Shown here in pieces: positions 7,815 through 58,323 of a stretch of 64,000 bases of DNA. The position numbers and the translations under genes were made by a program. Under the pieces are notes generated by a model. The model had not been told where the DNA came from. It did not search any database and saw nothing but the letters and a program-made list of their open reading frames with translations. The stretch spans positions 158,079 to 222,078 of IMG/VR virus record IMGVR_UViG_3300037042_002125. One strand, written 5' to 3'. Each line of letters starts with the position of its first letter. Within the stretch, counting starts at the first letter, position 1.

Positions 7815-9242
7815 ATCAAGTTAGTTGCAACAAACTCTGAGATGTCGGTACTTAGGGCAGCCGCCTCTAAGAATCCAACAATCGCAGGGACAGTCCTACA
7901 AGGTATTGATGAGTCTTACTTTCACAACGAGTTTGCGAAAGAAGTCTTGGCACGGATACTTAAGGTTAATCAGAAGTCAGGAACTCCTCCTACTTGGCGT
8001 GAGTTATGCGACGACCCTCATATCCGTGAGGAGACAAGAAAGAAGTTACGCACCTCTGAGATTGACAAGATCAAAACCCCAGAGGAAGCACTGCGTAGCA
8101 TAAAACTTCTGCACGGCTACAGGCAGTTGCGTGGAATGTTCCAGCTGGCAGAAGATACGGTGGTATCACTGCGTAAGAAGAAGGTCAACCCAGATCGGCT
8201 GTTGACTACAATGGCGGATACGATCATCCAGCTAAGACAGAACCGAAGCGAAGGTAACCAAGTCCTTACGTTCGGCAAAGGTAACAACACCACTGACATA
8301 GTGAAGAACCTGCTGCTCGATGAAGAGAAGAATTTCCTACCAACAGGCTTTAAGGATTTTGACGACGAGAATGGTGGCATTAGCTTTGGCAATTTGTTCT
8401 TGTTAGCTGGTTCAACAGGTGGTGGCAAGAGCGCATTGGCAGCACAGTTAGGAATTAACTGGGCGGACATGGGTGAGGACGTAACAGTCATTCCACTTGA
8501 AATGTCCGAGGACGAAATGACAGCACGGTTAATGGCTAATGCAGCCAAGTTGGACGTGCGAAAGATTCTGTTCCGCAGGCTTAGTGAAGACGAGAAGAAG
8601 ATCTACTGGAAACGCTACAAACGATTTGTGATGCGTAAGAAGAAGGTAGAAGGTTCCTTCAGAGTGTTCAAGCCTAAGAGTGACATGAACATCCAAGAGA
8701 TAATGGCTACGGTCTATCCCTTGGGCAGTAGAGTTGTCATCATCGATTACGTGTCGTTGTTGAAGGACGTTGATGGTGATGACGCATGGCAAAAGCTTGG
8801 TGCTGTCGCCCGCTATTGCAAGGTCTATGCCGAGACTCACAACATCATTATCGTCTTGCTGGCGCAGGTTAGCGATGAAGGTATTGTCAGGTACGCAAGG
8901 TCACTTGTTGAACATGCCAACTATGCTTGGAGATTTGTTGCAACGTCTGCAACTCGGGAACATGAGATCATAAACATAGACCAGCTTAAGGCGCGTAATG
9001 GTCGCATGTTTGAGTTTACGCTCCGGGCACAGATGGCCTACATGCGGATACGCAACCTCGACATAGAGGAGAAAGAAGAACTTATGTCCAGGATTAGCGG
9101 GTCGTCTGAAAACAAGGACAAGGGTGCTATTAAGGGCAAGCGGTTTGACAAGACTCGGAAGCACAGTGACAAAGAAGACAAACCTAAGAAGACTAACCCA
9201 GGCAAGGACTACTTGAAGGATTTGTCGGATGACGAAGATTAA
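7815..9242 (+). CDS. dnaB: DnaB-like replicative helicase (probable ATC start at 7815; first ATG at 7842)
   Basis: LPTGFKDFD, AGSTGGGKS, LEMS, IIDY, LAQ, LKARNG; charged C-terminal tail. Confidence 0.9.
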   Translation: MKLVATNSEMSVLRAAASKNPTIAGTVLQGIDESYFHNEFAKEVLARILKVNQKSGTPPTWRELCDDPHIREETRKKLRTSEIDKIKTPEEALRSIKLLHGYRQLRGMFQLAEDTVVSLRKKKVNPDRLLTTMADTIIQLRQNRSEGNQVLTFGKGNNTTDIVKNLLLDEEKNFLPTGFKDFDDENGGISFGNLFLLAGSTGGGKSALAAQLGINWADMGEDVTVIPLEMSEDEMTARLMANAAKLDVRKILFRRLSEDEKKIYWKRYKRFVMRKKKVEGSFRVFKPKSDMNIQEIMATVYPLGSRVVIIDYVSLLKDVDGDDAWQKLGAVARYCKVYAETHNIIIVLLAQVSDEGIVRYARSLVEHANYAWRFVATSATREHEIINIDQLKARNGRMFEFTLRAQMAYMRIRNLDIEEKEELMSRISGSSENKDKGAIKGKRFDKTRKHSDKEDKPKKTNPGKDYLKDLSDDED

Positions 9243-31385: not shown

Positions 31386-31961
31386 TTAAGTTCTTGATCG
31401 GTAAGTCTTACGCTTACTCTTACGCCTACGTCGAAATTTAGGTCGTTTGGGTTGGGGTTTGGGTTTCAACTCTGGTGCCCCTGGTAGGTACACCCTCTGC
31501 CTAGCTCGTGTCGTTCTCTTGGACAGTTCGCCTGCTCTCCAAGCAAGACGCGCCAGTATGCTCATCCTTATATCAGGTTCAACAGGGACAATCTTTGCCT
31601 TCTTGACAACACGCATCAGGCCGTATTCACTTAAGACAAGCACACCTACTCGACTAGGTATGCGAGACATCAGCTCTTTATCCTTGTTGATCTTTCGAGC
31701 TACATCGACTGTGAATGCCAAGTACACACGATCTGCAAATTTCAAATACTCATGCCACTTAGAATCAGATCGGAAATCAGCTACACTTGATTTAACCTCT
31801 ATGAGGACCAAGTCTCCTGATATCTTGTTGCCAATTACGTCTGCCCGACGGGTTCCCCACGATTGCAAACCAACCTCATAGGCCATTGAATAGCGGTACC
31901 TAAAGAACATAAAAGCAGACGCTTTTTTAAGTGCGTCTGCTACTTCACGTCTAGTAGCCAT
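31386..31961 (-). CDS. mmcB: MmcB-family PD-(D/E)XK nuclease
   Basis: RRADVI..IEVKSSVADFRSDSKWHEYLKFADRVY. Confidence 0.85.
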   Translation of the reverse strand: MATRREVADALKKASAFMFFRYRYSMAYEVGLQSWGTRRADVIGNKISGDLVLIEVKSSVADFRSDSKWHEYLKFADRVYLAFTVDVARKINKDKELMSRIPSRVGVLVLSEYGLMRVVKKAKIVPVEPDIRMSILARLAWRAGELSKRTTRARQRVYLPGAPELKPKPQPKRPKFRRRRKSKRKTYRSRT

Positions 31962-38821: not shown

Positions 38822-40282
38822 TTACTCTCCGTCCTCGTCATCTTCGTCAGTTCCTTGTGTTGCTTTCCCTTGGGCTGAGAACAAAATCTCAGCCTTGCCG
38901 CTTGCCATCTGTGCAAAGCACATCTTACGCAGGTTCATAGGCTTGGGTATTCCCGCTTTCTTGCATACGCTGGCCATGTCGTCTTTTGACCCAAGTATCC
39001 ACAGCTTGAAGTCATCCCATGACAACGGACGTGTTGACTTGGAATGGTTCCAGAACAGAGTAAGCGCCGTACGGCCTTTGCCTTTGAGCTGCCCACTTGC
39101 TTTGAGGTAGTGCATGGTGTCGTACACTGGATCAACTCCGTGTGCTGTACCATTGCTATCCTTAGTCCACAGGCGGATGAATCCTTCTCGATCAGATTCA
39201 GACAGTTTGTTCTTAACTGCCTTAACGCTAATGTACTTGTAGAGGTCCTTGCCGCCGTCAATAGAACGTTCTACCTCATAACCCTTCTTGACCTTGTCTT
39301 CCTTAGGCCACAGTTTTATAGCACTAAGGGCACGAGGGTAGAACCGCAGACGTGCGTCACTGTTATATCGAAGCGCCTTTCCACAAGGTTCCGCTTCCTT
39401 AGGACCAAACATTGCCATGGGTACGTCGCGCAATTGGTTAACACCAAGCACAGCTACTTTCTTGCTAGCCAGGGAACCCTTAACCCGCGGCAGATTCTTT
39501 GAGAACATGCGTGCCTGTAGTGCCAGCGAGTTATCAGAGTTGTCTTCATCCTTGTAGTCTGGGTTCATGTTAGGGTAGCTATCAACAATTACAACTCCTT
39601 GCAGACCAGAGTCGGGAGCAGGTACGTATATGCCAGCGCCATAACGCTTAGCCATAGTTGCGTCTGCATGTTCCTTCATGTGTGCATTAGACTTATCGTC
39701 ATCATATACTAGCCACCACTTGCCGTTCAACAGCTTCTTATCAGGCAGTCTACGCAAGATGGCTGCAAACCAGTTGAAGAAGGATACCCCTTTGGTGCTT
39801 GAGCTATATCTCACTCGTGGAGGGACCAACCAGTCGCCTGTCTTATCATCCTTCTTGCCGAACAGTTCTTCCTTTGACATCTTAATACCAGACGTCTTGA
39901 GAATGCTTTTGACATACGGCAGAGAGTTGCCTGTGCTACCTTCAAAGTCACGCAGGGAAATGATAGGCACCTCATGTTTGATTGCACTCGCCATTACCAA
40001 CAAGGCTGCCGTTGTCTTTGCACTCTGCTCTGGACCAAAGTTTGTGTACCATGCTGGCCGTATCCCGCCGCCCAAAATGTAATCAAGCACAAGGCTGCCT
40101 GTGGACATTGGCACAACATCATCGAGAGTGTCGGCATCAGATAGCTTCTTGGCCACCTCATCAAGAACCCTTGTGTACCCTGCGTAGGGGTTGAACGCCT
40201 TGTCAACGGCTTTGTCGACCTTGTTAGGTTTGATATCCTTGTTTGGTTTAGAAGGTTTTTTAGGTGTCTTTGTTTTTGCCAT
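38822..40282 (-). CDS. recA: RecA/UvsX-like recombinase
   Basis: STGSLVLDYILGGG, GPEQSAKTT, IVDS, ALQARMFS, NQLR, GKALRYNSDARL, KNK; start MAKTK at 40282. Confidence 0.92.
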   Translation of the reverse strand: MAKTKTPKKPSKPNKDIKPNKVDKAVDKAFNPYAGYTRVLDEVAKKLSDADTLDDVVPMSTGSLVLDYILGGGIRPAWYTNFGPEQSAKTTAALLVMASAIKHEVPIISLRDFEGSTGNSLPYVKSILKTSGIKMSKEELFGKKDDKTGDWLVPPRVRYSSSTKGVSFFNWFAAILRRLPDKKLLNGKWWLVYDDDKSNAHMKEHADATMAKRYGAGIYVPAPDSGLQGVVIVDSYPNMNPDYKDEDNSDNSLALQARMFSKNLPRVKGSLASKKVAVLGVNQLRDVPMAMFGPKEAEPCGKALRYNSDARLRFYPRALSAIKLWPKEDKVKKGYEVERSIDGGKDLYKYISVKAVKNKLSESDREGFIRLWTKDSNGTAHGVDPVYDTMHYLKASGQLKGKGRTALTLFWNHSKSTRPLSWDDFKLWILGSKDDMASVCKKAGIPKPMNLRKMCFAQMASGKAEILFSAQGKATQGTDEDDEDGE

Positions 40283-40292
40283 TATATTGTCT

Positions 40293-41192
40293 TTATACAG
40301 ATTTTGTACGGAAGAACTCATTGAGACGAGATAGGGCTATCAATGCGCCTGACACTTTGGGTTCATCAACACTATATACCTTGCCTTTTACATCTTTGGG
40401 CAAGCATGTACCTGCAACCCCCATGGTATTCTCATGGCACCCTATTTTGTTATAATTTGTTAGTGTGTTCAGCCTAGGATCCAAGTGTATGTAATCTACT
40501 ATGCTTTGTGCTTGTTTAGAACTTATACCATGATGAACAGCTTCGTTATAAACTAAGTTGGCAGCCATCAACTTGATAAATAAAGATAGGTTCTTTCCTG
40601 TTTTGATCAACAAACATTCTTCTGCAGATTTACGATTAAAGACTATTGGTGTAGTTTGTGTCTTACAGTTACGCAATGTCTTCTTAAACGTATCGTCTAT
40701 TGCCTTGTTTGTCCAAGGTCCATATACGATGTCAGTCTGATTGTAGAAATCAGAAGCAGCATTTTTCTCTGTTAAGAACTCTGGGCATACTATAAGATTG
40801 AAAGCCCTGTGGATAAACCTATACCTCAACATCTTGTATTCGTTTACCCCCATAGTGCTGATCAAGATAACAAGACCTTTGTATTTTAGATCGCACAGCA
40901 AGCTGAGTACTTTGTTGATATTTGTCATATCATACCCATAACCTTTTGCAGGCGTATTGACACAAACAAATATAGCTCTAGTATGGTGTACCCAAGGTAC
41001 ACACAGGTCAGGGTGCTTTTTTACATCATACACCCAAGAGTTGACAGAATTTGCAATAAACCCACTTCCGATTGCAGATCCTACTACTCCATAGCCAATA
41101 ATACCATACTGCGGTTTTGAACCTGTCTCAAAAAGAGTTCTCATACTAAGGGCTGTAGCGGTAGCAAAGTTGCAATTAGTTTTGGTCTTCAT
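40293..41192 (-). CDS. UDP-glucose/GDP-mannose dehydrogenase family protein (short, lacks C-terminal domain)
   Basis: GYGVVG, VCVNTP, IST, CPEFL, DPRL, GVAGTCLPKD. Confidence 0.8.
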   Translation of the reverse strand: MKTKTNCNFATATALSMRTLFETGSKPQYGIIGYGVVGSAIGSGFIANSVNSWVYDVKKHPDLCVPWVHHTRAIFVCVNTPAKGYGYDMTNINKVLSLLCDLKYKGLVILISTMGVNEYKMLRYRFIHRAFNLIVCPEFLTEKNAASDFYNQTDIVYGPWTNKAIDDTFKKTLRNCKTQTTPIVFNRKSAEECLLIKTGKNLSLFIKLMAANLVYNEAVHHGISSKQAQSIVDYIHLDPRLNTLTNYNKIGCHENTMGVAGTCLPKDVKGKVYSVDEPKVSGALIALSRLNEFFRTKSV

Positions 41193-41212
41193 ATATTTCC
41201 TTGTTAACTAGT

Positions 41213-41220
41213 TATTTACA
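41213..41220 (-). promoter_or_regulatory. TGTAAATA motif
   Basis: Overlaps the DUF2264 stop, upstream of the dehydrogenase and recA. Confidence 0.5.
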
Positions 41221-42367
41221 AAATGATGCCTTCACCATACGATGAATCAATAGATACACTTTCACCTGACCATACTTTAGCTTGCGTCCACTTTTGATCT
41301 TCTGAGGACCAAAAGGGATGATCGTCCGATACAGCTAAAGGTAAAAGAAAGAAGCCAGTTGCGTATAGACTAGACGTGCTAACATAAGGTTCAGATAAAC
41401 AGAATGTCTCATACTTTGAATTAAACCCGTTTCTAAGCATCCCATTAGTCTCGAACATATTCTGTTCGAGCCTCTTTAATACTGCAGTCATACCACATCG
41501 GGACTTCCCCAAAAATCCTGACTCATTTATATCTTGGACTTTACTACACCAACGAGATAGGTGGTGAAATGCTCCTAATCTATAAGTAGCAGACCTACCA
41601 ATAACGGGATAAGTACCTTCGGGAGATATAAGGCGCTCTAAGATACGAGAGTACCGTTCTGACCTAAACGGTTGGTTTACTAACAACGCCTGCATTCTAG
41701 GGTCATCGGCGGTAACTTCTTTGATCGTATCTAAAGCAGGGTGGGTTACGATGCTATTGTAGTAATCAGTATGCAAATCAGGACCGTCCCCGTAAATCGA
41801 CCCACCTTTATAAGATGCTAACGTATTAAGGACAGCAAAATCCAGCCTCATAGGATCAAATGCACTTGACGCAAGTTTGTAAGAAAGAACCTCTGGCATT
41901 GCTGCCAGTAACAGCCAATTGTTCGTTAAAGGCCTAATTTTCTTTAGGTACTGGTTGTACACGACAAAGTTTTCAACAGCTATTGTAGTTGAGTATTCGA
42001 GCAGTGACTTGTAACCATAAGACATCGTATCTAAAATGGACCAAGTGAGGTATCCGTAGTCTACTATGTTCTGAGAGCACGGTTTACAGGAAATGTTGTT
42101 TTTACCAGAAAACAAGTTGTTAAACGCCTTAACTGATAGGTCAGCTAAGTCTCTCCTGTCTATCTCAACACTTGACATAGACTCTGGCGCAAATAACCAA
42201 CACCCTAGACTGTAAAGAATTCTAGAGTAAGCCTCTAGGTTTTGACACAGTTGACCGCCGTTAAAGTTACCAGTCCAAGGTATGTGTTTGTCGTCTGCTA
42301 ACAGGCTTAGGCAAGGTTTAGCGTATTTAACAGCAAAAGCTTCCCAGTAATTTCTGTCTCTAGACAT
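41216..42367 (-). CDS. DUF2264-family protein
   Basis: LEAYSR, NNWLL, Y.DG..DYYNS, LERLISPEGTYPVIGRSATYR, E.YVSTSSLY, PFWS. Confidence 0.8.
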   Translation of the reverse strand: MSRDRNYWEAFAVKYAKPCLSLLADDKHIPWTGNFNGGQLCQNLEAYSRILYSLGCWLFAPESMSSVEIDRRDLADLSVKAFNNLFSGKNNISCKPCSQNIVDYGYLTWSILDTMSYGYKSLLEYSTTIAVENFVVYNQYLKKIRPLTNNWLLLAAMPEVLSYKLASSAFDPMRLDFAVLNTLASYKGGSIYGDGPDLHTDYYNSIVTHPALDTIKEVTADDPRMQALLVNQPFRSERYSRILERLISPEGTYPVIGRSATYRLGAFHHLSRWCSKVQDINESGFLGKSRCGMTAVLKRLEQNMFETNGMLRNGFNSKYETFCLSEPYVSTSSLYATGFFLLPLAVSDDHPFWSSEDQKWTQAKVWSGESVSIDSSYGEGIIL

Positions 42368-43130
42368 TTAGAGTTACCCTTTGACTGACCACAGCATCAG
42401 TAGCCTTCCAATTATCATTAAGGTAACCTTGTTCAAGTCCAATATGGTGAGCCTCGCACCCCATAGTGTACCCAATCTTGTACCCTAACTCTGTTAATCT
42501 TATCTCTAACGCTATGTCGTACCCTCGAACTCCTTTTTTACTAAAAGTTTCTTCTATAAGTAACCACAAGTTGTCGTCTTCTAATACGTCTCTTCGCATA
42601 GAGTAGAATTGAGATAGCCACTTGTACTGTATTGTCGATAGGCTCTTGATAAAGTGCACTTTTGCTTTATCTTCTGGCATACCTGCATTGAGATATGACG
42701 CATAAGAGAGATATCTGGTTCTGTTGAAGTCAGAGTAACCCCTAACATTAGCAGCGTCAACTACTCCAATAGTATGAACGTCAAGGCCCCCGCTTCTGTT
42801 AAGAAGCGAATACCAAGCGTTATAGTGAGTTATTAGATCATCATCGAGGTTAACAAACCATTTCCAATCTGGATTTATAGTATTCTTAAACTCCCTTTTT
42901 GACCTTGCTACGGACATAGATTCCGGTATTTCATTGATCAGAAAGTGGTTTTCAGTTGCCAGCGCAGCTAGATCTATAGCAAGGCGTACGTTAGCTTCCA
43001 TTTTGCCATAATGCTGTATTATAAACACAGCGTTGCTGACGTTAGCCATTGCGCAAGACAAAGTAGCAAGCAGGGCATGACTACGCCCGGGATAAGTAGT
43101 TGTTAGAAGTACAAAATCAGTATAATTCAT
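42360..43130 (-). CDS. GT-A fold glycosyltransferase (GT2-like)
   Basis: LLTTTYPGR N-terminal strand, FVNLDDD (DxD), HHIG. Confidence 0.6.
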   Translation of the reverse strand: MNYTDFVLLTTTYPGRSHALLATLSCAMANVSNAVFIIQHYGKMEANVRLAIDLAALATENHFLINEIPESMSVARSKREFKNTINPDWKWFVNLDDDLITHYNAWYSLLNRSGGLDVHTIGVVDAANVRGYSDFNRTRYLSYASYLNAGMPEDKAKVHFIKSLSTIQYKWLSQFYSMRRDVLEDDNLWLLIEETFSKKGVRGYDIALEIRLTELGYKIGYTMGCEAHHIGLEQGYLNDNWKATDAVVSQRVTLNV

Positions 43131-43137
43131 TTAGGTT

Positions 43138-43161
43138 AGAAGGGGGACGTGTCCCCCTTCT
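43138..43161. terminator. GC-rich hairpin after ssb
   Basis: AGAAGGGGGAC/GTCCCCCTTCT perfect stem. Confidence 0.6.
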
Positions 43162-43191
43162 CTCTTTAGTTAATCTTCATCATCCTCAGTC

Positions 43192-44628
43192 TTAGTCGTC
43201 TTCATCCTCGTCGTCTTCATCATCCTCGTCATCATCGTCTGACTTCTTGGACTTTTTGCCTTTATTGGCCTGCTTCTTGGCTTTCTTGGCCGGCTTACCT
43301 TTGGCCTTTTTCTTTGGGACGTCGTCTAGATCATCGTCATCATCATCCTCGTCGTCATCATCTTCGTCCTCATCATCATCGTCATCTTTTTTAGATGGCT
43401 TCTTAGAAGGTTTACCCTTAGCTTTAGACGCTTTGGACTTTGGAACGTCCTCGTCTTCGTCATCATCGTCTTCATCATCCTCATCCTCATCGTCATCATC
43501 GTCGTCGGACTTCTTGGATTTCTTTGAGGGTTTGGCCTTGGCCTTCTTGCTCTTGGGTGTATCATCTTCGTCGTCCTCGTCATCTTCGTCCTCGTCATCA
43601 TCTTCGTCATCTTCATCATCGTCATCGTCGGACTTCTTGGATTTCTTCGAGGGCTTAGCCTTTGATTTCTTTGACTTTGGAGTATCCTCGTCTTCATCGT
43701 CTAGGTCATCATCTTCATCGAGGTCGTCTTCTTCGTCCTCATCGTCGTCTTTGGAATGCTTTTTGCCTTTAGCATTTTTATCTGGCTTGCCTTTACCCTT
43801 CTTTGACTTAGGTGTATCTTCATCATCATCATCGTCGTCATCATCCTCGTCGTCACCCTTCTTTTTCTTCTTACCACCGATAGTTGCCATACGCTCAGAC
43901 CAACGCTCAACTTCCTTCTTGGCTTCCTTAGGTGTTTCTGGGGACATCAGTGCAGACAAATCCCACAGCAAGTATTCCTGCTCTTCTTCTGTCAAGGGGC
44001 TATGGTCACCCTTTTGGATAGAGTATGCGTTAGCCGCCAGCTTCGCATCTGGGTCGTACATGATCGAGACATCGCAACCGTACTTGGGATTCGACAGGTC
44101 AAAGCCTTTCTTCTCGCCAGTCTTTTTGTCCTTGTGACGATTAAGAGCGCCAATTTTCTTCAACTCACGAATGAGTGTACTTGTCAGGCGTACGCCACGA
44201 GCAGGCGTCCAGGTCTTGCTACCTTTCGTCTTAATACCAGTCTTGTCTTCGGACTTGCTTGGGGTGCCTTTTTTGCTAGGCTCGTCTTCTTGCACAGACC
44301 TGATGATTGCATTGGTGAAGTATTCCTTCGAGAACCGAATACGCTCATCATCAGCCTCACAGTATGCACATGACTTGGTACTGTCATGATCTTCTGTTTG
44401 GGGATCGAACGACACACATGTCTTAGGAAATTTGATAGTCTTTCCCTCTTTGGATCTTGACTCAATCCAATGCTTCCCATAAGCAAAGATTGGGCCTACG
44501 AAACGTAGCTGCACCCATTCATTAGGCGGGAACTTGAACATGTCCACTATTTCGTCAGGGCGTGGATCCCTGTTGTTTGTGTCTTTGACGTCGCTAAACG
44601 TCTTGTTGGATTTGAAAACTGCTTTCAC
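43192..44628 (-). CDS. gp32-like single-stranded DNA-binding protein with very long Asp/Lys block tail
   Basis: LRFV, HW, KTC...CAYC, NAIIR, G.DV.I, YSI, LWDL pattern, then about 230 aa of D/E and K blocks; GTG start with GGAG RBS. Confidence 0.75.
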   Translation of the reverse strand: MKAVFKSNKTFSDVKDTNNRDPRPDEIVDMFKFPPNEWVQLRFVGPIFAYGKHWIESRSKEGKTIKFPKTCVSFDPQTEDHDSTKSCAYCEADDERIRFSKEYFTNAIIRSVQEDEPSKKGTPSKSEDKTGIKTKGSKTWTPARGVRLTSTLIRELKKIGALNRHKDKKTGEKKGFDLSNPKYGCDVSIMYDPDAKLAANAYSIQKGDHSPLTEEEQEYLLWDLSALMSPETPKEAKKEVERWSERMATIGGKKKKKGDDEDDDDDDDDEDTPKSKKGKGKPDKNAKGKKHSKDDDEDEEDDLDEDDDLDDEDEDTPKSKKSKAKPSKKSKKSDDDDDEDDEDDDEDEDDEDDEDDTPKSKKAKAKPSKKSKKSDDDDDDEDEDDEDDDDEDEDVPKSKASKAKGKPSKKPSKKDDDDDEDEDDDDEDDDDDDLDDVPKKKAKGKPAKKAKKQANKGKKSKKSDDDDEDDEDDEDEDD

Positions 44629-44673
44629 TTTTACTCCAGTTTGTTGTTAATGGAAATACATAACTAACACGTT

Positions 44674-44681
44674 TATTTACA
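44674..44681 (-). promoter_or_regulatory. TGTAAATA motif
   Basis: Overlaps a stop codon, upstream of ssb. Confidence 0.55.
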
Positions 44682-45399
44682 ATGCTATGTCTGCGTCTTT
44701 TAGAGTCTTCTTATTTATGTACTCCTCTAGTGCGTTCATAACCATCAACCTATCTCGTAGGTTCTTCCTCCACTTCTGATAAAGCTTCCTAACGTAATAA
44801 GATTGAATCACCAATGTGCCGTCAATCAATACACCTAGGTCGTAGTAATAGAATTGATTTCCATAGAAGTCTCGCATACGCTGCCTAAGTGTCTCTTCGT
44901 TTGACCACATGAAGTACGTCGCATGTTCATCGCTAAATGTGAACATATAGACTGGCACGCCTTTACTCATGATCACAAATTTGGACTTACTACTCAGTAT
45001 GTCAAACGTAGCAAACATTCTACCTTTGGCATTCTTGCTAATCTTTGCGTACACAAGATCTAAGTAAGGAAGATTCTTATCTTCCTCAGTAGAGGTAGAG
45101 TTTATAGTTAGTAGGTTGTAGATGATCTTGTGTGTCAAGTTGTCTTCTGACTCATCACCTACACGCATACCACCAATGGTGACACCACGACTTGGAGCAC
45201 TTAGCTTGGAGGTTTCTGCGTCAATGCAACCTAAGAAATAATCAAAAGGTTTCTCTTCGTCAGATACCTTCTCACCAAAGTGATTCCCTATCTCAATCTT
45301 GTCCATGTGTACAAAAGGGAACGTTACTGGAGAGACTGTACTAGATGCCTCTCCCCTATAACTGTGCAAAACAACACACCCGTATAAAAGGCCTGTCAT
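44677..45399 (-). CDS. hypothetical protein, possibly a degenerate Ntn/class II amidotransferase fold
   Basis: MTGLLYG..HSYRG start resembles CGI.G..RG; GRMFA, PVY; no N-terminal Cys. Confidence 0.45.
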   Translation of the reverse strand: MTGLLYGCVVLHSYRGEASSTVSPVTFPFVHMDKIEIGNHFGEKVSDEEKPFDYFLGCIDAETSKLSAPSRGVTIGGMRVGDESEDNLTHKIIYNLLTINSTSTEEDKNLPYLDLVYAKISKNAKGRMFATFDILSSKSKFVIMSKGVPVYMFTFSDEHATYFMWSNEETLRQRMRDFYGNQFYYYDLGVLIDGTLVIQSYYVRKLYQKWRKNLRDRLMVMNALEEYINKKTLKDADIAL

Positions 45400-49654: not shown

Positions 49655-50498
49655 GTCCCATGTCTTGACGAATCTTTGTAGCAGAGATTGAGTGTGTTGC
49701 GTCATCGAAAGTTTCCTGGGCAATTGTATAACCAACACCGCGTCCGTACCCAATGTGGGTGATGTTCGGCACAACTTGAATCTCGTACTGACCTTGGTAG
49801 ATAGGGTCAAGGTCACGTCGTATGAAGGCCTTAACTTTCTCAATCTCGAATGGATTGGAACCATTCCAGCCTTGGCAATCACGCACTTGGATCACAACTT
49901 GACCCGTCTTCTGGATCAGACGGTCAAACAATGCACGGTGGCCTTCGTGCCAAGGTTGCCAGCGGCCAAGCATCTGCACAGTTTCCTTCTGCCAGTTGAA
50001 GACAGGACGACGGCGGTTGTTCAGTATATGGTCGCCAATGAACTCCGCCCACTTGTCAGCGTTCTGTTCAGGGACTCGGAAGTCGTATTGCTCAGGTGGC
50101 ACAAACGCTTTGTTGGTGTCCTCATACCGGCCTTGGTCGATTGTATCAACCCAGATCGTCCAGTCGGCTTTGAAGTTGTGGCGCATTTCAGGCAGAGGGG
50201 CTACAAAGTCAGCAATAGCAAAATCACCTGCTGACTTTAGGGCAAACTCCGCCATACGCAGTGATTGACGGATGCGCCCGTCATGCGAGAAGTCCCAATC
50301 ATTGAACCGCTTGCGAATCTCGTCGGCGTTGAACCAATCAACCTTTACACAGTACGGGCCAAGCATCGAGTCAGTTGTCATCGCTCTGGACAGCGACATG
50401 TTGTTGGCAGTGCCGTTGTCCTCAATGTATTTCTTAAGTGCCATTGCAAGTGTTGTCTTGCCGGAGCCTGGAAGCCCCATTACGAGTATTTTTGTCAT
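49647..50498 (-). CDS. adenylylsulfate kinase fused to HxGH nucleotidyltransferase
   Basis: GLPGSGKT, NADEIR, DFSHDGRIRQ, DFVAP, FVPP; then GRWQPWHEGH, NPF, SISATKIR. Confidence 0.85.
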   Translation of the reverse strand: MTKILVMGLPGSGKTTLAMALKKYIEDNGTANNMSLSRAMTTDSMLGPYCVKVDWFNADEIRKRFNDWDFSHDGRIRQSLRMAEFALKSAGDFAIADFVAPLPEMRHNFKADWTIWVDTIDQGRYEDTNKAFVPPEQYDFRVPEQNADKWAEFIGDHILNNRRRPVFNWQKETVQMLGRWQPWHEGHRALFDRLIQKTGQVVIQVRDCQGWNGSNPFEIEKVKAFIRRDLDPIYQGQYEIQVVPNITHIGYGRGVGYTIAQETFDDATHSISATKIRQDMGLA

Positions 50499-50516
50499 GT
50501 TGTTACCTTGTTAGTG

Positions 50517-51014
50517 TTAGAAACCAATGTTCTGGTTAATTTTTTTAGCGAATGCCCAATCGTAATGTAGCTCATACTGTAAAGGCTTTTCACGATTTGC
50601 CAAACGCCTAGCTAATTCTTGGGCATGGTACTCTGGGAATACGTTGTCCCATTTGGAAGTTATTCGGATATCAAACTTTGACGGAGGCACAAACAATTTG
50701 TTAGTATCCTCGAACCGACCAGCTTCAATACGGTCAACCCAAATTGTGAATTGGGCATTGAACAATGCTCGCGTTTCCTCGGTAGGACACACAAAGTCGG
50801 CAATGACGTTTGCGCCCCACTTGGCTGCAATGTCACACAGGTGTCCCATGCGTCGCGCTTGCTCAACACGATCAGAAGATGAAAAACCAAGGTCCTTGTT
50901 AATGTTTTTGCGTATATCGTCGGCGTTGAAGTGTACGCACTTTAGATTTTTAGCCAAGGCCTCAGCAAGATAAGTCTTGCCGGACCCTGGTAGTCCCATA
51001 ATTAGGATCTTCAT
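50517..51014 (-). CDS. cysC: adenylylsulfate (APS) kinase
   Basis: GLPGSGKT, NADDIRK..DLGFS..DRVEQARR, DFVCP, FVPP. Confidence 0.85.
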   Translation of the reverse strand: MKILIMGLPGSGKTYLAEALAKNLKCVHFNADDIRKNINKDLGFSSSDRVEQARRMGHLCDIAAKWGANVIADFVCPTEETRALFNAQFTIWVDRIEAGRFEDTNKLFVPPSKFDIRITSKWDNVFPEYHAQELARRLANREKPLQYELHYDWAFAKKINQNIGF

Positions 51015-51033
51015 ATTGTTGAACTAGTTGGAG

Positions 51034-51345
51034 TTACTCGGCTTCGAGCATTTCCTTGACGCGGGCGCGCAACGTGTCGTCAGTCCACGTGCCGCGCACG
51101 GCCAAGTACGCATCGCCTTCCCATGCGGTCATGTTGCGAGTAGTCAGTGGTGTAGTCGGGAACGAAACGACGACCTGAACGCTGCTCAGAGGACCGCGCC
51201 CAAAGTTCTCGCGATGCGGCTGATCTGGATTGGGGTTGGGAGGCGTGTAGCCGTAGTTTTCTTGAACGTCAACGAGATCAAATTCAGTGACGACGACGGC
51301 TGCAATTGCTGCGGCCACTACATAGCTTTTCGACAAGGCTGTCAT
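51034..51345 (-). CDS. hypothetical protein
   Basis: AAGGA RBS; Pro/Tyr-rich loop and C-terminal WEGDAY..GTWTD. Confidence 0.65.
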   Translation of the reverse strand: MTALSKSYVVAAAIAAVVVTEFDLVDVQENYGYTPPNPNPDQPHRENFGRGPLSSVQVVVSFPTTPLTTRNMTAWEGDAYLAVRGTWTDDTLRARVKEMLEAE

Positions 51346-51354
51346 GGTAAGTCC

Positions 51355-52272
51355 TTAAAGTTGAATGGCCGATTTTGGCCGTTGGGGTTGCGGGATAGAT
51401 TGCGGAGATTGTTTAACAAGTTGTGATTGGGTTGTTGGCTGGACATTGGGTACCCAGTTAAGTTGTGATTTGATTTGATCGAAATTACTCCTCCAAAAAG
51501 ATGCGGATTCATATTGCTGCCAAAGGTCTCCAGGCAGAATACTAACACGTTGCTTGAATTCAACCTTCTTACGAACCGTATGGAGACCTACAATTTTTGT
51601 CTGCTGATCAAACTCATCGTAAGAATCTTCCACGCTATTTAAGTCATGGTTGAACCAAGGCTCGCCTATGAAATTATAAATAGCTTTGAGCACACTTAGG
51701 GGTTCGCATACTAACGTATCGTACTCAATGTACAGAATGTTCTTACGCTCATTGCAGAACAAAGATTGCTTTACGTTAGCCAAAGGACCCGCAACATAAC
51801 CTGGGAAGTTAGGAATCTGTCCCATAAGCATATTGCTACGCTCGTACACGGTACTTAGTTGCTGATGACCGTACAGTGGCTTGATCGTGTATGGATTTTT
51901 AGCATTTAGTTGCTCGAATGAATCGAGAATCCAAGGTATTTCTCGGACGCACACAATCATCTTGAACGTAGGGAACAGATCAGCAAGCAAGGCCGTCTCT
52001 GCGGACCACCCTCGGTTGGTATTGAAACAAACGTCAGTCTTGTTTTCCTTGTAGTAACTATCAAACAGATCACGAATCATCTGCCTGCGTTTATCAATAG
52101 ATACTACAGCCTCCATCCCTGCTGCTGTACCTGTATCCTTGATGATGCTGTTGATGTACATAGCCAGCGGATCACTGATGCCAGTGGAGAACCTTGGGTT
52201 CTGCTTCAAGATCGCGCTGAGCAACGTAGTACCCGATCGAGGCAAGCCAGAAATAAAGTGATATGTCTTCAT
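51355..52272 (-). CDS. PAPS-dependent sulfotransferase, RaxST-like
   Basis: YHFISGLPRSGTTLL..IL.QNP, NTNRGW, IVCVR..WILDSFE, YDTL, GLH.VR, FW. Confidence 0.9.
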   Translation of the reverse strand: MKTYHFISGLPRSGTTLLSAILKQNPRFSTGISDPLAMYINSIIKDTGTAAGMEAVVSIDKRRQMIRDLFDSYYKENKTDVCFNTNRGWSAETALLADLFPTFKMIVCVREIPWILDSFEQLNAKNPYTIKPLYGHQQLSTVYERSNMLMGQIPNFPGYVAGPLANVKQSLFCNERKNILYIEYDTLVCEPLSVLKAIYNFIGEPWFNHDLNSVEDSYDEFDQQTKIVGLHTVRKKVEFKQRVSILPGDLWQQYESASFWRSNFDQIKSQLNWVPNVQPTTQSQLVKQSPQSIPQPQRPKSAIQL

Positions 52273-52358
52273 TTGAAAACTCCAGTGACTACGCCGATAA
52301 TGTAGCCAAGAATGAACGCTACCATCGGGTGCTGTATGACGGCGTGAAGTTTAGCCAT
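52269..52358 (-). CDS. 29-aa membrane peptide (not in ORF track)
   Basis: MAKLHAVIQHPMVAFILGYIIGVVTGVFK; overlaps both neighbours. Confidence 0.5.
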   Translation of the reverse strand: MAKLHAVIQHPMVAFILGYIIGVVTGVFK

Positions 52359-54063
52359 TAGACTTCACCTTAGTGATAAGCTTGCCAAGGTCAGGCATGT
52401 ATAGGTACTGTATCTCGCTATTGAACAGAGTGACCAGCGCATCATACGTGCTCTCGACCAGCGGTTGGCCGGCCAGATTGAAGCTGGTGTTGAACAGCAT
52501 AGGCATTCCGGTAATTGACTCAAAAGCTTTGATGAGTTTGTAGTACACAGGGTTCTGTTTTTCAGTAACAGTCTGGATGCGGCAGGTACCGTCAACGTGT
52601 GTCACTGCGGGAATAAGATCGGCCTTGTCTTCACGCACCTTCACAGCGTACATCATGAACGGAGACTCTTCGAGGCCGGCCATTTCAAACAGTTGGTCTG
52701 CGTACTCTGCCATAACCGAGCCTGCAAAGGGGCGGAACCACTCGCGGTGCTTGACCGAGTTGATAAACTCTTTACCATTAGGCGCGCGCGGATCAAACAA
52801 GATACTGCGATTGCCCAAAGCGCGTGGACCGCCTTCTGCTTGCCCTTGGAACAAGGCGACGATCTGTTGTTTGGACAATAGGTCTGCTACATCTTCTGCA
52901 GTTGCATCTTCTACCTTGATGTTGCCGTTCTTCTCAGCCACCTGAATGGCCTCGTAGTTAGGAGGGGCGCCAAGATACACTGACGTTAGAGGGCGCACCG
53001 TCAGTTCCTTGCTGTGCTGATACCACGCGTATTGTGCCAGGCCGATCGCCGTGCCGCCGTCATGCGCCATTGGATCAACGTAGAACTCAATGTTAGGGAA
53101 CGCCTTGACGTACTTGTAGTTGGCGACGCAGTTGAGCGCGAACCCACCAGATAGTACGATGTTGGTTTCACCAGTTGTGTCAATCGCCTTCTGGATCAAC
53201 CGCATCACCATTTCTTCGGCTTCATTTTGAACCGCGTAAGCAAGGTTCTTGTCTTGCTCACGAACCAGATTGAAATCGTTGTGCCACTCACGAGGCTCAG
53301 TGTAGCGTTTCAGATATGGGAACCTGTTCTCGTCGATGTGTGCGCCCGCTGGGTACGCAGGGATCAGCAGGTTTTTGTTTCCCTTGCCGTTGACGAAGAA
53401 GGGTGGGATGCTCGTGTCTGGTTTTCCGTACGGGGACAAGCCCATTGTCTTACCAGCTTCAATGAAGCCGAATCCCAGGTACTGGGAGACAGCTTCGTAT
53501 GCCTTGGTAATGGTGACAGAGCTATCAAACTCTTGGATGCCGTTGTCGTAGTAGGTGTTGGTGCCACCGTCGGAGTAGCGTTTGTAGACTGCATTGAACT
53601 CATGTGGGTAACTGCATTGGTAAATTGTCTCGGTCTCGTATCCGGCAACCTCTGGGCCGTTCTCGCTAACACGTTCACGGTGGACCGAACCAGAACCGTC
53701 AACGATGATTGCGGCGGCGGTCTCAAAGCCTGAACCGTAAAAGGCAGCCGCAGCGTGGCCAAGATGGTGTAAGTTCCCCATCACAGATACCTTGATATTC
53801 GGGTTAAATTTACGGGCCAATGCAGAGTACGCATTTTCCCCTGTCCACGGTAAAACAGCTAATTCCGGTGAGGTACCGCCTATAATTAGCTCGTCTACGG
53901 GGTGATTTATGAGGACCTGTAGCATAGCACGAAACGGGTTTCCGTCGTATTTCATGCGACTGACTCGTTCTTCTTCACCATAGAAGGCAAGAACACCGTC
54001 TACGACGAGGGCGGCGCTGCCGTTGTGGCCTGGATTGATTGCCAAAATTGAATACATGGTCAT
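52351..54063 (-). CDS. O-carbamoyltransferase (NodU/CmcH/TobZ family)
   Basis: GHNGSAA, EEERVSRMKYD, HHLGHA, VDGSG, GKTMGL, GGFALNC, DGGTAIG, GPRALGNRS, REWFRPFA, NTSFN. Confidence 0.95.
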   Translation of the reverse strand: MTMYSILAINPGHNGSAALVVDGVLAFYGEEERVSRMKYDGNPFRAMLQVLINHPVDELIIGGTSPELAVLPWTGENAYSALARKFNPNIKVSVMGNLHHLGHAAAAFYGSGFETAAAIIVDGSGSVHRERVSENGPEVAGYETETIYQCSYPHEFNAVYKRYSDGGTNTYYDNGIQEFDSSVTITKAYEAVSQYLGFGFIEAGKTMGLSPYGKPDTSIPPFFVNGKGNKNLLIPAYPAGAHIDENRFPYLKRYTEPREWHNDFNLVREQDKNLAYAVQNEAEEMVMRLIQKAIDTTGETNIVLSGGFALNCVANYKYVKAFPNIEFYVDPMAHDGGTAIGLAQYAWYQHSKELTVRPLTSVYLGAPPNYEAIQVAEKNGNIKVEDATAEDVADLLSKQQIVALFQGQAEGGPRALGNRSILFDPRAPNGKEFINSVKHREWFRPFAGSVMAEYADQLFEMAGLEESPFMMYAVKVREDKADLIPAVTHVDGTCRIQTVTEKQNPVYYKLIKAFESITGMPMLFNTSFNLAGQPLVESTYDALVTLFNSEIQYLYMPDLGKLITKVKSNG

Positions 54064-54989
54064 TTCACTTTCTTGTCGACGTCAGCACAGATGGATACGA
54101 AGATTTCGTTGAGGTCCTTCTCGGAGAACCGCATGGTTGACTCATTGAGCCTGTTGGACAACGCTACGTCAAGACCGGCCAGACGGATAGGGCTGTACTT
54201 CTTGACGGTCAGACGATCAATGATATTGAAGTAGTCCGGGTACGACGTATTGATCGGGAACGTAGAGCCAAAGATCACAGAGCCGGGTGTACCGACCGCA
54301 CGAGCAATGTGCTGGCCTACGCTGTCGCAACCAACGAAGTAGTCGGCTTCGGCAATCAACGCACCCCACTGGCGCAGATCGCAAGTGTACTTGGCGGCAA
54401 AGTTGTCGTCCTTGAGTTGGAAGTCAGGCTCGCCGAAGAACACCATGTTGTATCTTTGGGCTAATTTCTTCACCAGCGACAGGTAATCCTTTTGGCTCAA
54501 GCTGCGGGATTCTTCATCGATGATCGCAGTCTTGTCAATCTTGGCGCCTCGACCAAACGGTTGGAAGATCACGGTCCGTTGCTTCTTCTGGATGCCCTTG
54601 AGGTCGTTGAGTGTGCTGGTAGCCACAGCGCGTTCGGTGATGTTGAACACCATCTGCGGTACGCCCAGATCGCTGTGATCCTTGGTCAGATTGATTTCCC
54701 GGTCAAAGCCTTCGACCAGCGAAATCTCCTGACGGAAATATGCGGGGTTGCGATACGGCTCAGGTGTGATGATACGATCCGCGTTCTTCACCACGTTGTC
54801 AAACACGCCCTTGGTGTCCAGGTTATACGCACGATCCTGTAGCTCAGGAATGCCCCAGAACAGAAAGTCCCATGCACCAATGAGCACAGCCCAATCATCA
54901 TTAGGGTTGAGCCGTCCGTACTTGATGAGTGCGGGGATGGCCGCGATCACTCGGCCTGCGCCGCCGTCGATGAAAAATATAGTCTTCAC
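54060..54989 (-). CDS. GT-B glycosyltransferase, GT9 (heptosyltransferase)-like
   Basis: GGAGRVIAAIPAL, FQPFG, ADYFVGCDSVGQHIARAVGTP..IFGST. Confidence 0.75.
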   Translation of the reverse strand: MKTIFFIDGGAGRVIAAIPALIKYGRLNPNDDWAVLIGAWDFLFWGIPELQDRAYNLDTKGVFDNVVKNADRIITPEPYRNPAYFRQEISLVEGFDREINLTKDHSDLGVPQMVFNITERAVATSTLNDLKGIQKKQRTVIFQPFGRGAKIDKTAIIDEESRSLSQKDYLSLVKKLAQRYNMVFFGEPDFQLKDDNFAAKYTCDLRQWGALIAEADYFVGCDSVGQHIARAVGTPGSVIFGSTFPINTSYPDYFNIIDRLTVKKYSPIRLAGLDVALSNRLNESTMRFSEKDLNEIFVSICADVDKKVK

Positions 54990-55705
54990 AGTAGGAGTCT
55001 TTCTTCAGTGGTTGTTGCTATTTCGGAAGTAGTAGGCGCTAAGCCTGTTAGCGAAATGTTCAAGTGTCGCTCGAACAGGATGTCAGTCTGGAGCAACGTG
55101 CCTCGCTCATCGTACGAGGTGCCAAAGATGTCGATTGCTACGTATCCGATTGCCGCCATGTACGCGATGACTTCGGCAAACAGAGGTGCGTCCTTGTTGT
55201 ATTCTGCGATTGAGCACTCCAATAAAATGTACAGAGGCAGCTTATCAAGAATGAATCCGGATGCGCCCTTGAGTATCAGTAGCTCTGCGCCCTGTGCATC
55301 GATTTTGATTAGTCCGTTCGTTGACCACGAGCCGAAGAAGTTGTGCTTGCGGTGCAGGGCGTCCACCGTTGTCATGTGCTTCTTCAGGACTAGCGTAGAC
55401 ATCGGGTTGTAGTGGAACGTCTGCTCAAGGAAGATTGAGCTGCCCGTAGTGTTCTTGTCTTCGCCGAGCGTGTAGAAATTCACGTTGTCTTGCTCACGAT
55501 CACCAAGCAAGGCGATGATCGCTCGGTCAGATAACCACGGCGCCTGGCGTTCGTCAGCTTCGATCTGCCACACTATAGCAGTAGGCCACACGGCTCTGAC
55601 CGTTTCAGTGAACTCACCACGGTAGGCGCCAATGTCAAGCACGTAGTTGATGTGTCTTCCGTGGTTCTTCAACACCGAGAACCTCTGTCTGAATTGTTCA
55701 ATCAT
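54986..55705 (-). CDS. FkbM-family methyltransferase
   Basis: LDIGAYRG, IEA, TGSS, IKIDAQGAELLILKG, Q.DILF. Confidence 0.9.
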   Translation of the reverse strand: MIEQFRQRFSVLKNHGRHINYVLDIGAYRGEFTETVRAVWPTAIVWQIEADERQAPWLSDRAIIALLGDREQDNVNFYTLGEDKNTTGSSIFLEQTFHYNPMSTLVLKKHMTTVDALHRKHNFFGSWSTNGLIKIDAQGAELLILKGASGFILDKLPLYILLECSIAEYNKDAPLFAEVIAYMAAIGYVAIDIFGTSYDERGTLLQTDILFERHLNISLTGLAPTTSEIATTTEERLLL

Positions 55706-56502
55706 TTTCTGTTCCAAAAGTCGAGCTGCATATCAGTGTAGAGATTGGTCAGTTCGTGTCCGATCACTTTCTCGGGCTCAGGACTTGTCTGAGCCATCGT
55801 CGGGCGCACGTCATGCAGACCTTCGAGACCGCCGTGGTATGAGTCGTTCTCAGGCATTGGCTGTAGCGAATCCAGACGGACTCCGCAGGACTCAATGCCG
55901 ACGAACTGACAGACCTGGTCCATTGTTCCCTGACTGTTATTTACAATGTCCAAATAGCGTAGCACCAGCAGGTCAGCAGCACCTGATTGAAATCCATGAC
56001 GCAGCGCCATGTAGGGCACGTTGATGTAACGCTCCCACAAAATCTTGCATCTGTTCTTGTCGTTGATCGGCAGCCCCTTGTCGATCAGGTCTTGATCCAC
56101 GAACGTAGTCTTGTGAGAGTTCTTGCGTATCAGCAGAATGTAGGACGCCAGCACACTGGGTATGGATCGCACTGTGCAGATGATCTTGGGACGCTCGTGC
56201 AGAACGTCCTTCATCATGTGAGCCTGACGCGGCCAGATGCGGTTCTTGTCAACGATGATAGGCTTGGATACGTGCTCGTAAGCGCCGAACACCAAGCCTC
56301 GCATCATGTTGCTGTACTGGTTTGGGTCTGGATTGACTAACGCTGCCGAGATTTGGGGCCAGTTGTTGTTGAAGATCGTAATCATGTCCACCACTGGTGA
56401 CGTAGTGGAGGCATGAATCATCGGATGTTGATTCAGCAAGGACGCAAGTACCTGTGAGCCAGAGCGTGGAATGCCCGAGAGCATGATAAAAGACTTGTCC
56501 AT
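55702..56502 (-). CDS. second PAPS-dependent sulfotransferase, RaxST-like
   Basis: SGIPRSGSQVL..LLNQHP, DKNRIW, ICTVR..LAS, GLHDVR, DFW. Confidence 0.88.
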   Translation of the reverse strand: MDKSFIMLSGIPRSGSQVLASLLNQHPMIHASTTSPVVDMITIFNNNWPQISAALVNPDPNQYSNMMRGLVFGAYEHVSKPIIVDKNRIWPRQAHMMKDVLHERPKIICTVRSIPSVLASYILLIRKNSHKTTFVDQDLIDKGLPINDKNRCKILWERYINVPYMALRHGFQSGAADLLVLRYLDIVNNSQGTMDQVCQFVGIESCGVRLDSLQPMPENDSYHGGLEGLHDVRPTMAQTSPEPEKVIGHELTNLYTDMQLDFWNRK

Positions 56503-56987
56503 TACAGTTGTTTCCCGTTCGTTGGGGCCGCAGTTGCTGTAGTACCGCGCATAATCTCAAGGAACTCCTTTGTGCCTAGGAAGTTCCAGCCACCATCAAT
56601 CTCGTACCGCACATTGGCCAAGGCATTTCGTTGGATAGCTTGCACGGCCCAATTCAGTACACGAGCGTCAAGCCGTTGCCCCATTTCCTTTATGGTGACG
56701 AACGATACTCCAGTTCGGGTTGTTTCCAACACTAGCAACGCGTTGACCAGATTAGGCTTCATCCATGCAGGGATAGCGAGCGACCTCAACCATAGACAGC
56801 GGAACGTTTTGCACGGTTGCTCAGGTCGATCTTCATAGATGGTGCAGCCAGTTTCACACACGAAATGGCACTTCGTACCTGGATAGAACTGGTGTCCGTG
56901 CGCTTCGCCGGTCGCCCAACCATCGCAGCAGGCCGTACAGCCACCACAGTTCCTTTCAGCCATTATGTGAATTGTGGCACCTCTCAT
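56502..56987 (-). CDS. Cys-cluster protein (YkgJ/CxxCxxCC-like, Zn or Fe-S binding)
   Basis: CGGCTACC...CHFVC..GCTIYEDRP..CKTFRCLW. Confidence 0.75.
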   Translation of the reverse strand: MRGATIHIMAERNCGGCTACCDGWATGEAHGHQFYPGTKCHFVCETGCTIYEDRPEQPCKTFRCLWLRSLAIPAWMKPNLVNALLVLETTRTGVSFVTIKEMGQRLDARVLNWAVQAIQRNALANVRYEIDGGWNFLGTKEFLEIMRGTTATAAPTNGKQL

Positions 56988-57682: not shown

Positions 57683-58323
57683 TGCAGTGCCTTTATCAAG
57701 TCTCGAAATTCTAGGAGGACAGTCTGTGCATCGGGCCCGAGATAGTTGTTCATGAACGAACGATATGGTACGGTGTCCGTCCACTCGTACACAATCTCCT
57801 CGTACTCGCGGTCGTGAAAAATGCTGTTGCCAACCAGGTGTTCTAGCATACTCAGTTTAGGCACCACAAGCATATTGCCGTCACGCTCAGTGAATATCCA
57901 GCGATGGTGAATGAAACCCAACCACTTGGCGCTCTCGATCCGCGTAAGTTCTGTGCGGATGCTGGGCGTGGTAATGACGCCGGCCTTGGCAATACGCGGC
58001 AGTAGCTCCAACGTAGTGAACGGGTTGTAGAGGTCTTCGAGAGTGTGAGTGCAGATCGCGTAGTCGAAGCGTCCGTGACGTTCCACATACTCAAGCATGG
58101 TGTTCCACGCCTCACGGTCGCAGACATCAATTCTCACGCCACTAGGTGACGTCACTGCATTGATGTCAATCACGAGGTCAGTGATAGACGCAGACCAGCC
58201 TCCGCCATGAGTACCGCCGACGTCAATGACAGAGTATCCCGGCGTCTGTTGTTTGGTGTTCCCTACGTCGTGTAGGATACGCGCACGGGTATGCAGCGTC
58301 CTACCGTATTTGATTGTGAGCAT
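57679..58323 (-). CDS. SAM-methyltransferase-like protein
   Basis: VIDVGG, FDYAICTHTLEDL.NP, HHRW. Confidence 0.7.
   Translation of the reverse strand: MLTIKYGRTLHTRARILHDVGNTKQQTPGYSVIDVGGTHGGGWSASITDLVIDINAVTSPSGVRIDVCDREAWNTMLEYVERHGRFDYAICTHTLEDLYNPFTTLELLPRIAKAGVITTPSIRTELTRIESAKWLGFIHHRWIFTERDGNMLVVPKLSMLEHLVGNSIFHDREYEEIVYEWTDTVPYRSFMNNYLGPDAQTVLLEFRDLIKALQ

Follow-up and report, generated by a model that had tools for sequence, protein, structure and literature searches.

A predicted gp32-type single-stranded-DNA-binding protein with a long, regular charge-block tail in jumbo phages

The SSB gene and its tail

[quoted passage not shown] We analyzed the final 64 kb (64,000 nucleotides, hereafter the window) of the 222,078-bp IMG/VR virus record IMGVR_UViG_3300037042_002125, which is estimated to be 93% complete. 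One gene of this window encodes an SSB from a family in which the tail is enlarged five-fold into a regular block polyampholyte, where runs of Asp and Glu alternate with Lys-rich blocks. The phage is an uncultivated freshwater jumbo phage of the phiRSL1/PaBG ('Lupandier'/Mieseafarmvirus-like) group. Comparison of its DNA polymerase/SSB region with phage genomes by blastn returned patches of only ~115 bp, indicating that a close cultured relative at the DNA level is absent. The gene and the parts of its tail are as follows.

43192..44628, minus strand: whole SSB gene, 478 codons and a TAA stop, GTG start (open reading frame (ORF) list, translation and phrog_15004 match)
44634..44637, minus strand: Shine-Dalgarno sequence GGAG, 5 nt 5′ of the GTG (sequence inspection)
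43195..43878, minus strand: block-polyampholyte tail, predicted to be disordered, residues 251–478 (composition, kappa, sequence charge decoration (SCD), block table and predicted local distance difference test (pLDDT))
43816..43854, minus strand: acidic block 1, residues 259–271, net charge −13 (this and the next five from the block table)
43684..43749, minus strand: acidic block 2, residues 294–315, net charge −20
43561..43629, minus strand: acidic block 3, residues 334–356, net charge −23
43447..43506, minus strand: acidic block 4, residues 375–394, net charge −20
43321..43386, minus strand: acidic block 5, residues 415–436, net charge −21
43195..43239, minus strand: acidic block 6, the C-terminus, residues 464–478, net charge −15, without an aromatic residue
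43451..43746, strand not assigned: 123-bp (41-codon) tandem repeat, ~2.4 copies of 77–81% identity (Tandem Repeats Finder)

The GTG start is sound, since homologues align from about residue 9. A sequence-only reading of this DNA had described, at 43192–43880 (residues ~250–478), a tail of ~230 aa in which about six acidic runs alternate with repeated basic spacers, and this description proved accurate. The tail has 228 residues and exactly six acidic runs of 13, 22, 23, 20, 22 and 15 aa. Between them lie five Lys-rich spacers of 18–27 aa with a net charge of +9 to +14 each; three open with TPKSKK, one with VPKSKA and one with VPKKKA, and each contains a second K-P. A short K5 block precedes acidic block 1. 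The repeat unit can thus be written as a D/E run of 13–23 residues, any residue, Pro-Lys and a Lys/Ser/Ala/Gly block of 18–27 residues. In the tail as a whole, 87 residues are Asp, 26 Glu and 56 Lys, and none is Arg or aromatic; the fraction of charged residues (FCR) is 0.74 and the net charge −57. No other ORF among the ~261 of the 222-kb genome has several long D/E runs.

The tail had also been called condensate-like on the basis of its composition, and the charge-patterning calculation that bears on this gave a divided answer. Kappa, a measure of charge segregation, was very high, namely 0.70 compared to 0.17 ± 0.03 in shuffled tails (maximum 0.28, n = 300). SCD, however, was +50.0 compared to 54.8 ± 3.1 in shuffles, only about 1.5 standard deviations lower, so that the tail is a strong polyanion and no near-neutral polyampholyte; SCD stays strongly positive despite the high kappa because of the net charge of −57. 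In a full-length model, pLDDT exceeded 90 in the core and fell to 45–54 over residues 251–478 with no secondary structure, and the tail is predicted to be disordered. We rejected a single-alpha-helix tail, because Pro interrupts its Asp-rich blocks, which are ~20 residues long, and because helix was absent from the model. A search of the ESM Atlas for look-alikes of the tail gave no usable feature match, and its structure rows, with template modelling scores of at most 0.25, are meaningless for a disordered segment.

The DNA of the tail carries many sub-repeats of 3–18 bp in addition to the 123-bp repeat. One 123-bp unit encodes one acidic block plus one Lys block and underlies the central blocks, indicating that the tail grew by unit duplication.

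Identity of the core

Next, the folded part of the protein was compared with known SSBs.

43879..44568, minus strand: gp32-type oligonucleotide/oligosaccharide-binding (OB)-fold core, residues 21–250 (predicted fold and Foldseek)
44569..44628, minus strand: N-terminal residues 1–20, Lys-containing and predicted to be disordered, positional counterpart of the gp32 B-domain (pLDDT and alignment)
44359..44472, minus strand: codons of a putative zinc tetrad, His53, Cys71, Cys87 and Cys90 (family covariation and hhalign)

The protein matched phrog_15004, 'single strand DNA binding protein', with an E-value of 1.1e-79 (residues 8–421 to positions 5–421 of the 421-position profile), and this profile extends over the tail besides the core. 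In contrast, a Pfam scan of the whole protein gave no family at E ≤ 1, and hence no match to bacterial SSB (PF00436) either. A profile search of PDB sequences with a 36-member core alignment gave no gp32 chain at E ≤ 10; its only matches were chance ones to a carboxypeptidase at E 0.2. Aligning the family with T4 gp32 by hhalign produced only a local match of 31 columns at 3% probability, which pairs the CxxC of C87/C90 with the CxxC of T4. With no gp32 match at the sequence level, membership in the gp32 type rests on fold and not on sequence.

The core was folded from an alignment of 36 core sequences from related loci, and the model reached a mean pLDDT of 91.7 and a predicted template modelling score of 0.85. 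Its only significant Foldseek matches were gp32 cores, those of RB69 (2a1k, 1.3e-6) and T4 (1gpc, 2.3e-5). The structural alignment begins between residues 25 and 29 of either protein and pairs residues 28–244 of the model with residues 28–239 of gp32, indicating that the onset of the tail corresponds to that of the gp32 A-domain, and the disordered residues 1–20 to the B-domain. These 20 residues include four Lys, and pLDDT is below 50 over residues 1–18. The general layout is likewise that of T4 and RB69 gp32, in which a zinc-containing OB-fold core is preceded by the basic B-domain at the N-terminus and followed by the acidic A-domain at the C-terminus; a basic N-terminal segment and an acidic C-terminal domain flank the core here. 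Nevertheless, the gp32 proteins are only 13–17% identical to the window SSB, which has no Pfam or PDB sequence match.

The sequence of T4 gp32 has H64, C77, C87 and C90, its established zinc ligands, and His53, Cys71, Cys87 and Cys90 of the window protein correspond to them. These four positions co-vary: 21 of the 36 members have H-C-C-C, and about 12, phiRSL1 included, have Y-x-D-R. The core thus has a putative His-Cys3 zinc site. Taken together, the predicted fold, the zinc tetrad and the PHROG match support the assignment as a gp32-type SSB, in agreement with the SSB identity first read from the letters. Tyr-x-Asp-Arg replaces the whole His-Cys3 tetrad in one subclade (loci L011, L013, L015, L026, L032, L034 and L035, the last being phiRSL1, and others), apparently a zinc-free version of the gp32 knuckle. 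This subclade includes some of the longest and most acidic tails of the family.

It had been stated that ordinary gp32 tails are short and only acidic, and the numbers for T4 gp32 agree. The A-domain of T4 gp32 has 48 aa compared to 228 aa in the window tail, 15 acidic residues compared to 113, and a kappa of 0.29 compared to 0.70. It contains only 3 Lys or Arg and no D/E run longer than 3, and lacks the five interleaved Lys blocks of the window tail. E. coli-type SSBs (an OB tetramer, a disordered linker and an acidic DDDIPF tip) likewise have a disordered C-terminus with an acidic end; the linker of E. coli SSB is Gly/Gln/Pro-rich and nearly uncharged, and not a charge-block chain. The window protein differs from them in its gp32-like core, with no Pfam SSB match, and in a tail without an aromatic tip. 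In E. coli SSB, the disordered C-terminus governs autoinhibition, partner binding and condensation (PMC7584906, PMC12143593).

The block architecture is kept across the family, but the sequence is not

The trait is real; what the sequence-only reading missed is that a whole family, already catalogued, shares it. When the core was used as a tblastn query, 95 cultured phage genomes were found, all of jumbo phages and at 32–40% identity; their hosts are Erwinia, Pseudomonas, Dickeya, Burkholderia, Rhizobium, Xanthomonas, Ralstonia, Vibrio, Achromobacter and Yersinia. The low-complexity filter of tblastn masks the tails. When the annotated genes were translated, acidic and Lys blocks were seen to alternate likewise in the proteins of phiRSL1 (490 aa), PaBG (403 aa) and the Rhizobium phage RHph_N46, whose 427-aa product carries the label 'Nop14-like family protein'. 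A scan of IMG/VR with the single protein as query gave no loci, and one with a four-sequence alignment gave 54, mostly on contigs of 130–320 kb.

Tail statistics were then calculated for 48 homologues, all distinct, complete and encoded on jumbo-phage contigs. In 45 of them, phiRSL1, PaBG and the Rhizobium phages included, Lys blocks alternate with three or more acidic runs. The tails range from 55 to 257 aa (median 156) with 1–9 acidic runs (median 5), kappa lies between 0.44 and 0.75 (z > 5 against shuffles in 47 of the 48), and net charge varies from +9 to −75 (median −13.5; +4 in the near-neutral tail of PaBG). A Pro opens a Lys block within three residues of the acidic run in 184 of 235 runs (78%). 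The cores, in turn, are 32–46% identical to that of the window. These results showed that the block architecture is kept family-wide whereas the sequence is not, and that the tail is remodelled by tandem duplication. Phages that keep the pattern infect Ralstonia, Pseudomonas, Erwinia, Dickeya, Burkholderia, Xanthomonas, Rhizobium, Vibrio and many hosts from freshwater that are uncultured.

Members of phrog_15004 include phiRSL1 ORF222, PaBG gp117, Lu11, BcepSaruman, Ea35-70-like Erwinia phages, Dickeya JA11-like phages and the Rhizobium RHph phages; they share with the window the core at the identity given above and the alternating tail, and UvsX is a neighbour of their SSB. The window tail is among the longest and most acidic of them. 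C-terminal tips in the family fall into classes, namely acidic with Trp or Phe, ...DVPF, and poly-Lys (the Erwinia/Dickeya clade), and the purely acidic end of the window tail has none of the W/F, DVPF or poly-Lys tips. The proteins of loci L017 and L055 end in ...DVPF, which resembles the partner-binding DDDIPF tip of bacterial SSB.

The protein family, tail included, is already in databases, and the window gene is a new member of it. In the literature that could be searched, we found no paper describing the charge-block tail, and the genome paper of PaBG is silent on the SSB; such a regular chain of charge blocks on a gp32-type SSB is an uncharacterized, family-wide variant of the SSB acidic tail. 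Three Rhizobium phage records (MW980063, MN988515 and MN988535) label the homologue 'Nop14-like family protein', evidently because of the composition of the tail, and several further public records call it 'hypothetical protein'. Both annotations should become SSB.

The DNA of this locus also occurs in metagenomes of lake water, freshwater and sediment, which come from about ten studies; this comparison took 1601 bases and used contigs and not raw reads, so that it shows presence and variants rather than expression. In the comparison with public runs, the SSB gene appeared in no RNA run. A contig from a different sample had 0 differences over 43100–43744, and a 67-kb lake-water contig from another study covers 43211–44700 with 32 substitutions and 6 gaps. 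The matching independent contig and the spanning 67-kb contig indicate that the tail is not a mis-assembly.

Several minor features were seen in and around the gene. A 296-aa poly-Ser ORF on the plus strand (43247..44137) was rejected as a gene, being the mirror image of the GAT/GAC/GAA runs of the tail. Between the SSB stop and the ATG of the next gene (43130) lies a perfect 10-bp GC-rich hairpin (43138–43161) and, on the coding strand, no clear U-run after it; attenuation or stabilization of the RNA is a possible function. Past the SSB TAA, at 43170–43195 and with a shift of one base, six codons read T-E-D-D-E-D before a further TAA, perhaps as the remnant of an acidic end that was once longer. 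Contigs from other lakes part from the window sequence exactly at the 3′ end of the SSB gene, which suggests variant C-termini.

Neighboring genes and possible roles of the tail

The gene belongs to a replication/recombination module of DNA polymerase, a kinase-like gene, an unknown ORF, SSB, three sugar-related genes, UvsX, SbcD, a methyltransferase, a clamp loader and SbcC. Two products of the window are considered as candidate partners.

38822..40321, minus strand: UvsX/RecA-like recombinase (phrog_97, E 4e-43; Pfam RecA, E 2.3e-18)
7842..9242, plus strand: DnaB-like helicase with a ~50-aa mixed-charge C-terminus ending in SDDED (Pfam DnaB_C, E 4.2e-22)

Sequence beyond the SSB gene was available for 46 distinct related loci, and in every one of them the gene directly downstream encodes a UvsX homologue (E ≤ 1e-28 to the UvsX of the window). 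The window differs from the phrog_15004 members in having three genes in between, so that its UvsX lies 2.9 kb downstream on the same strand. The gap (40293–43130, minus strand) encodes an unknown 256-aa protein, a DUF2264 protein (E 2e-49) and a UDP-glucose/GDP-mannose dehydrogenase-like protein, and the strict adjacency in the relatives makes it look like an inserted sugar-metabolism cassette. The true start of UvsX is probably Met14 (nt 40282; MAKTK..., as in the MAK-K starts of relatives) and not 40321; with this start, the 29-nt overlap with the upstream gene ending at 40293 disappears. Past Met14, the window UvsX has a Lys/Pro-rich stretch, and its last eight residues form an acidic tip, DEDDEDGE. 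An acidic tip was found in 25 of 34 complete UvsX homologues.

We propose, giving it an even chance of being right, that the protein is a replication/recombination SSB whose tail would be an enlarged, multivalent form of the SSB acidic tail that clusters SSB-ssDNA complexes with the recombinase and the helicase. Before DNA is bound, the acidic blocks would contact both the Lys blocks and the basic cleft for single-stranded DNA (ssDNA). The protein would thereby inhibit itself, as is established for gp32, T7 gp2.5 and E. coli SSB, whose acidic tails are competitors of ssDNA at the core. Binding of ssDNA by the core would release the tails. The SSB-coated strand would then display many acidic and basic blocks, which could bind in trans to neighboring SSBs, cations, DNA and partner tails; complementary tails might be offered by UvsX, with its Lys-rich N-terminus and acidic tip, and by the charged C-terminus of DnaB. 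The outcome would be cooperative clustering of SSB-ssDNA with recombinase and helicase, possibly as a heterotypic condensate, which would need Mg2+, polyamines or basic partners. With a net tail charge of −57, any condensation would have to be heterotypic.

Several points weigh against this proposal. Homotypic coacervation by the tail alone is unlikely: the SCD and net charge predict an expanded polyanion, and ssDNA binding adds further negative charge. Since net tail charge varies from positive to strongly negative within the family, no single electrostatic mechanism is guaranteed. The Lys-rich N-terminal extension of UvsX occurs in fewer than half of the relatives (21/46), and acidic tips are common among RecA-family proteins and thus not specific. 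The charged tails of DnaB and RecA, to which the sequence-only reading had drawn attention, do exist in this genome, but both are short and carry modest weight.

A condensate scaffold is nevertheless a plausible reading. Its grammar is present here, with blocky segregation of D/E and Lys in a predicted-disordered region that is attached to a domain for nucleic-acid binding. E. coli SSB forms condensates by way of its disordered tail (PMC7584906, PMC12143593), condensates in RPA mixtures are scaffolded by T4 gp32 and UvsX (PMC11951158), and nucleolar proteins that bind nucleic acids undergo asymmetric complex coacervation driven by their D/E tracts and K-blocks (PMC11938373). The last of these agrees with the parallel to nucleolar condensate proteins that had been drawn at the outset. 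Like the intrinsically disordered regions of nucleolin, UBF, NPM1, NUCKS and POLR1F, the tail joins long D/E tracts and Lys blocks to a nucleic-acid-binding domain; the likeness, which the 'Nop14-like' label of the Rhizobium phage homologues reflects, is compositional only, with no homology, and the window tail is prokaryotic and Asp- rather than Glu-rich.

A search of the 222-kb record with phiKZ gp54 (chimallin) gave no match at E ≤ 1, using a single sequence against a 93%-complete record and without a positive control. A sigma-70 factor gene adjoins the SSB gene in relatives, and relatives transcribe with host RNA polymerase and a phage sigma factor (PMC7412058). Given the blank chimallin search, a weak negative, and the use of sigma-70 and host polymerase, these phages probably form no nucleus; this would be compatible with a membraneless organization without demonstrating one. 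A bolder version of the proposal would make the SSB of phiRSL1-, PaBG-, Lu11- and Ea35-70-like phages, lacking a shelled nucleus, the scaffold of a membraneless replication/recombination factory. SSB-coated ssDNA would seed a heterotypic coacervate in which polycations and the charged (Lys-rich or acidic) UvsX and helicase tails take part; the block number, fast-changing through tandem duplication, would tune its material properties, and the system would be a counterpart, in viruses of prokaryotes, of the nucleolar D/E-tract/K-block grammar. We regard this version as doubtful.

Other explanations of the tail were weighed against the same evidence. The tail could act in cis only, as an intramolecular ssDNA mimic and autoinhibitor whose acidic blocks fill the DNA cleft and whose Lys blocks tune it, which would set affinity and cooperativity, like the gp32 A-domain, without any scaffold. 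The onset of the tail at the A-domain position, the known competition of acidic SSB tails with ssDNA, and a large net negative charge with positive SCD, which favors intramolecular or DNA-competitive electrostatics over self-coacervation, all point this way. In T4, however, a 48-aa tail suffices for this purpose; six blocks with conserved, interleaved Lys blocks and Pro junctions exceed the use of one cleft, and such high valence is typical of multivalent interaction. We consider cis-only regulation rather unlikely. A charged brush might instead keep host nucleases and defense proteins off the ssDNA, or titrate nucleoid proteins, polyamines and DNA-binding defense factors. The very high charge density would suit such a shield or decoy, as would the exposure of the DNA in the cytoplasm that the lack of a chimallin match (again a weak negative) and the use of host RNA polymerase by relatives (PMC7412058) imply. 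The strict synteny of SSB and UvsX points instead to a role inside replication and recombination. To our knowledge, DNA-mimic anti-defense proteins are folded, and none is fused to an SSB. A shield or decoy thus appears improbable.

The tail might also be a neutral expansion of low-complexity sequence, produced by replication slippage in GAT/GAC/AAG-rich DNA and with no specific function beyond a short acidic end. The 123-bp repeat and its sub-repeats, the wide variation in block number and tail length, and the indels that separate environmental variants would all be accounted for. But the alternation persists in nearly all homologues, Pro is conserved where acidic runs give way to Lys blocks, no member has its reading frame interrupted over the ~700 nt, and the SSB is alone of its kind within the genome. 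Conservation of pattern, polarity and reading frame at 32–46% core identity weakens this explanation, to which we give a low probability. Finally, a mis-assembled repeat or a non-coding stretch could imitate such a gene, for low-complexity DNA is error-prone in assembly and short contigs of other organisms stack on the GAT/GAC runs. With an identical independent contig, a 67-kb contig spanning the gene and cultured phage genomes encoding the same architecture, an artefact is hardly credible.

The proposed clustering of SSB-ssDNA by a multivalent tail, if it took the form of a condensate, would show how large phages without chimallin concentrate their replication machinery. It would also offer a tractable model, with PaBG on PAO1 and Lu11 on P. 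putida, for relating charge-block valence to condensate behavior. Should the tail do no more than autoregulate DNA binding, the family would still provide the ssDNA-mimic model of SSB tails with an extreme example from nature.

Some further observations concern other charged or repetitive proteins of this phage. Outside the window, at G000:C1:116305-117291 on the plus strand (equal to L059:1306-2292), lies a gene for a 328-aa charge-rich, probably disordered protein with a 16-residue D/E run and a Lys/Pro/Ala block, which has no PHROG match. At 31386–31961 on the minus strand, an MmcB-like DNA-repair protein (Pfam E 2e-20) has a net charge of +19 in its C-terminal 50 residues. From ~50000 to 64000, G+C climbs from ~0.43 to 0.51–0.53; this segment may be mosaic or acquired, and its genes include one for a Nol-like carbamoyltransferase, one for a 1132-aa tail-fibre/spike-like protein and several unknown ones. 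Collagen-like Gly-x-y repeats (TGPTGA...), which some phage fibre proteins also have, form the end of a 204-aa ORF at 22098–22712 on the plus strand.

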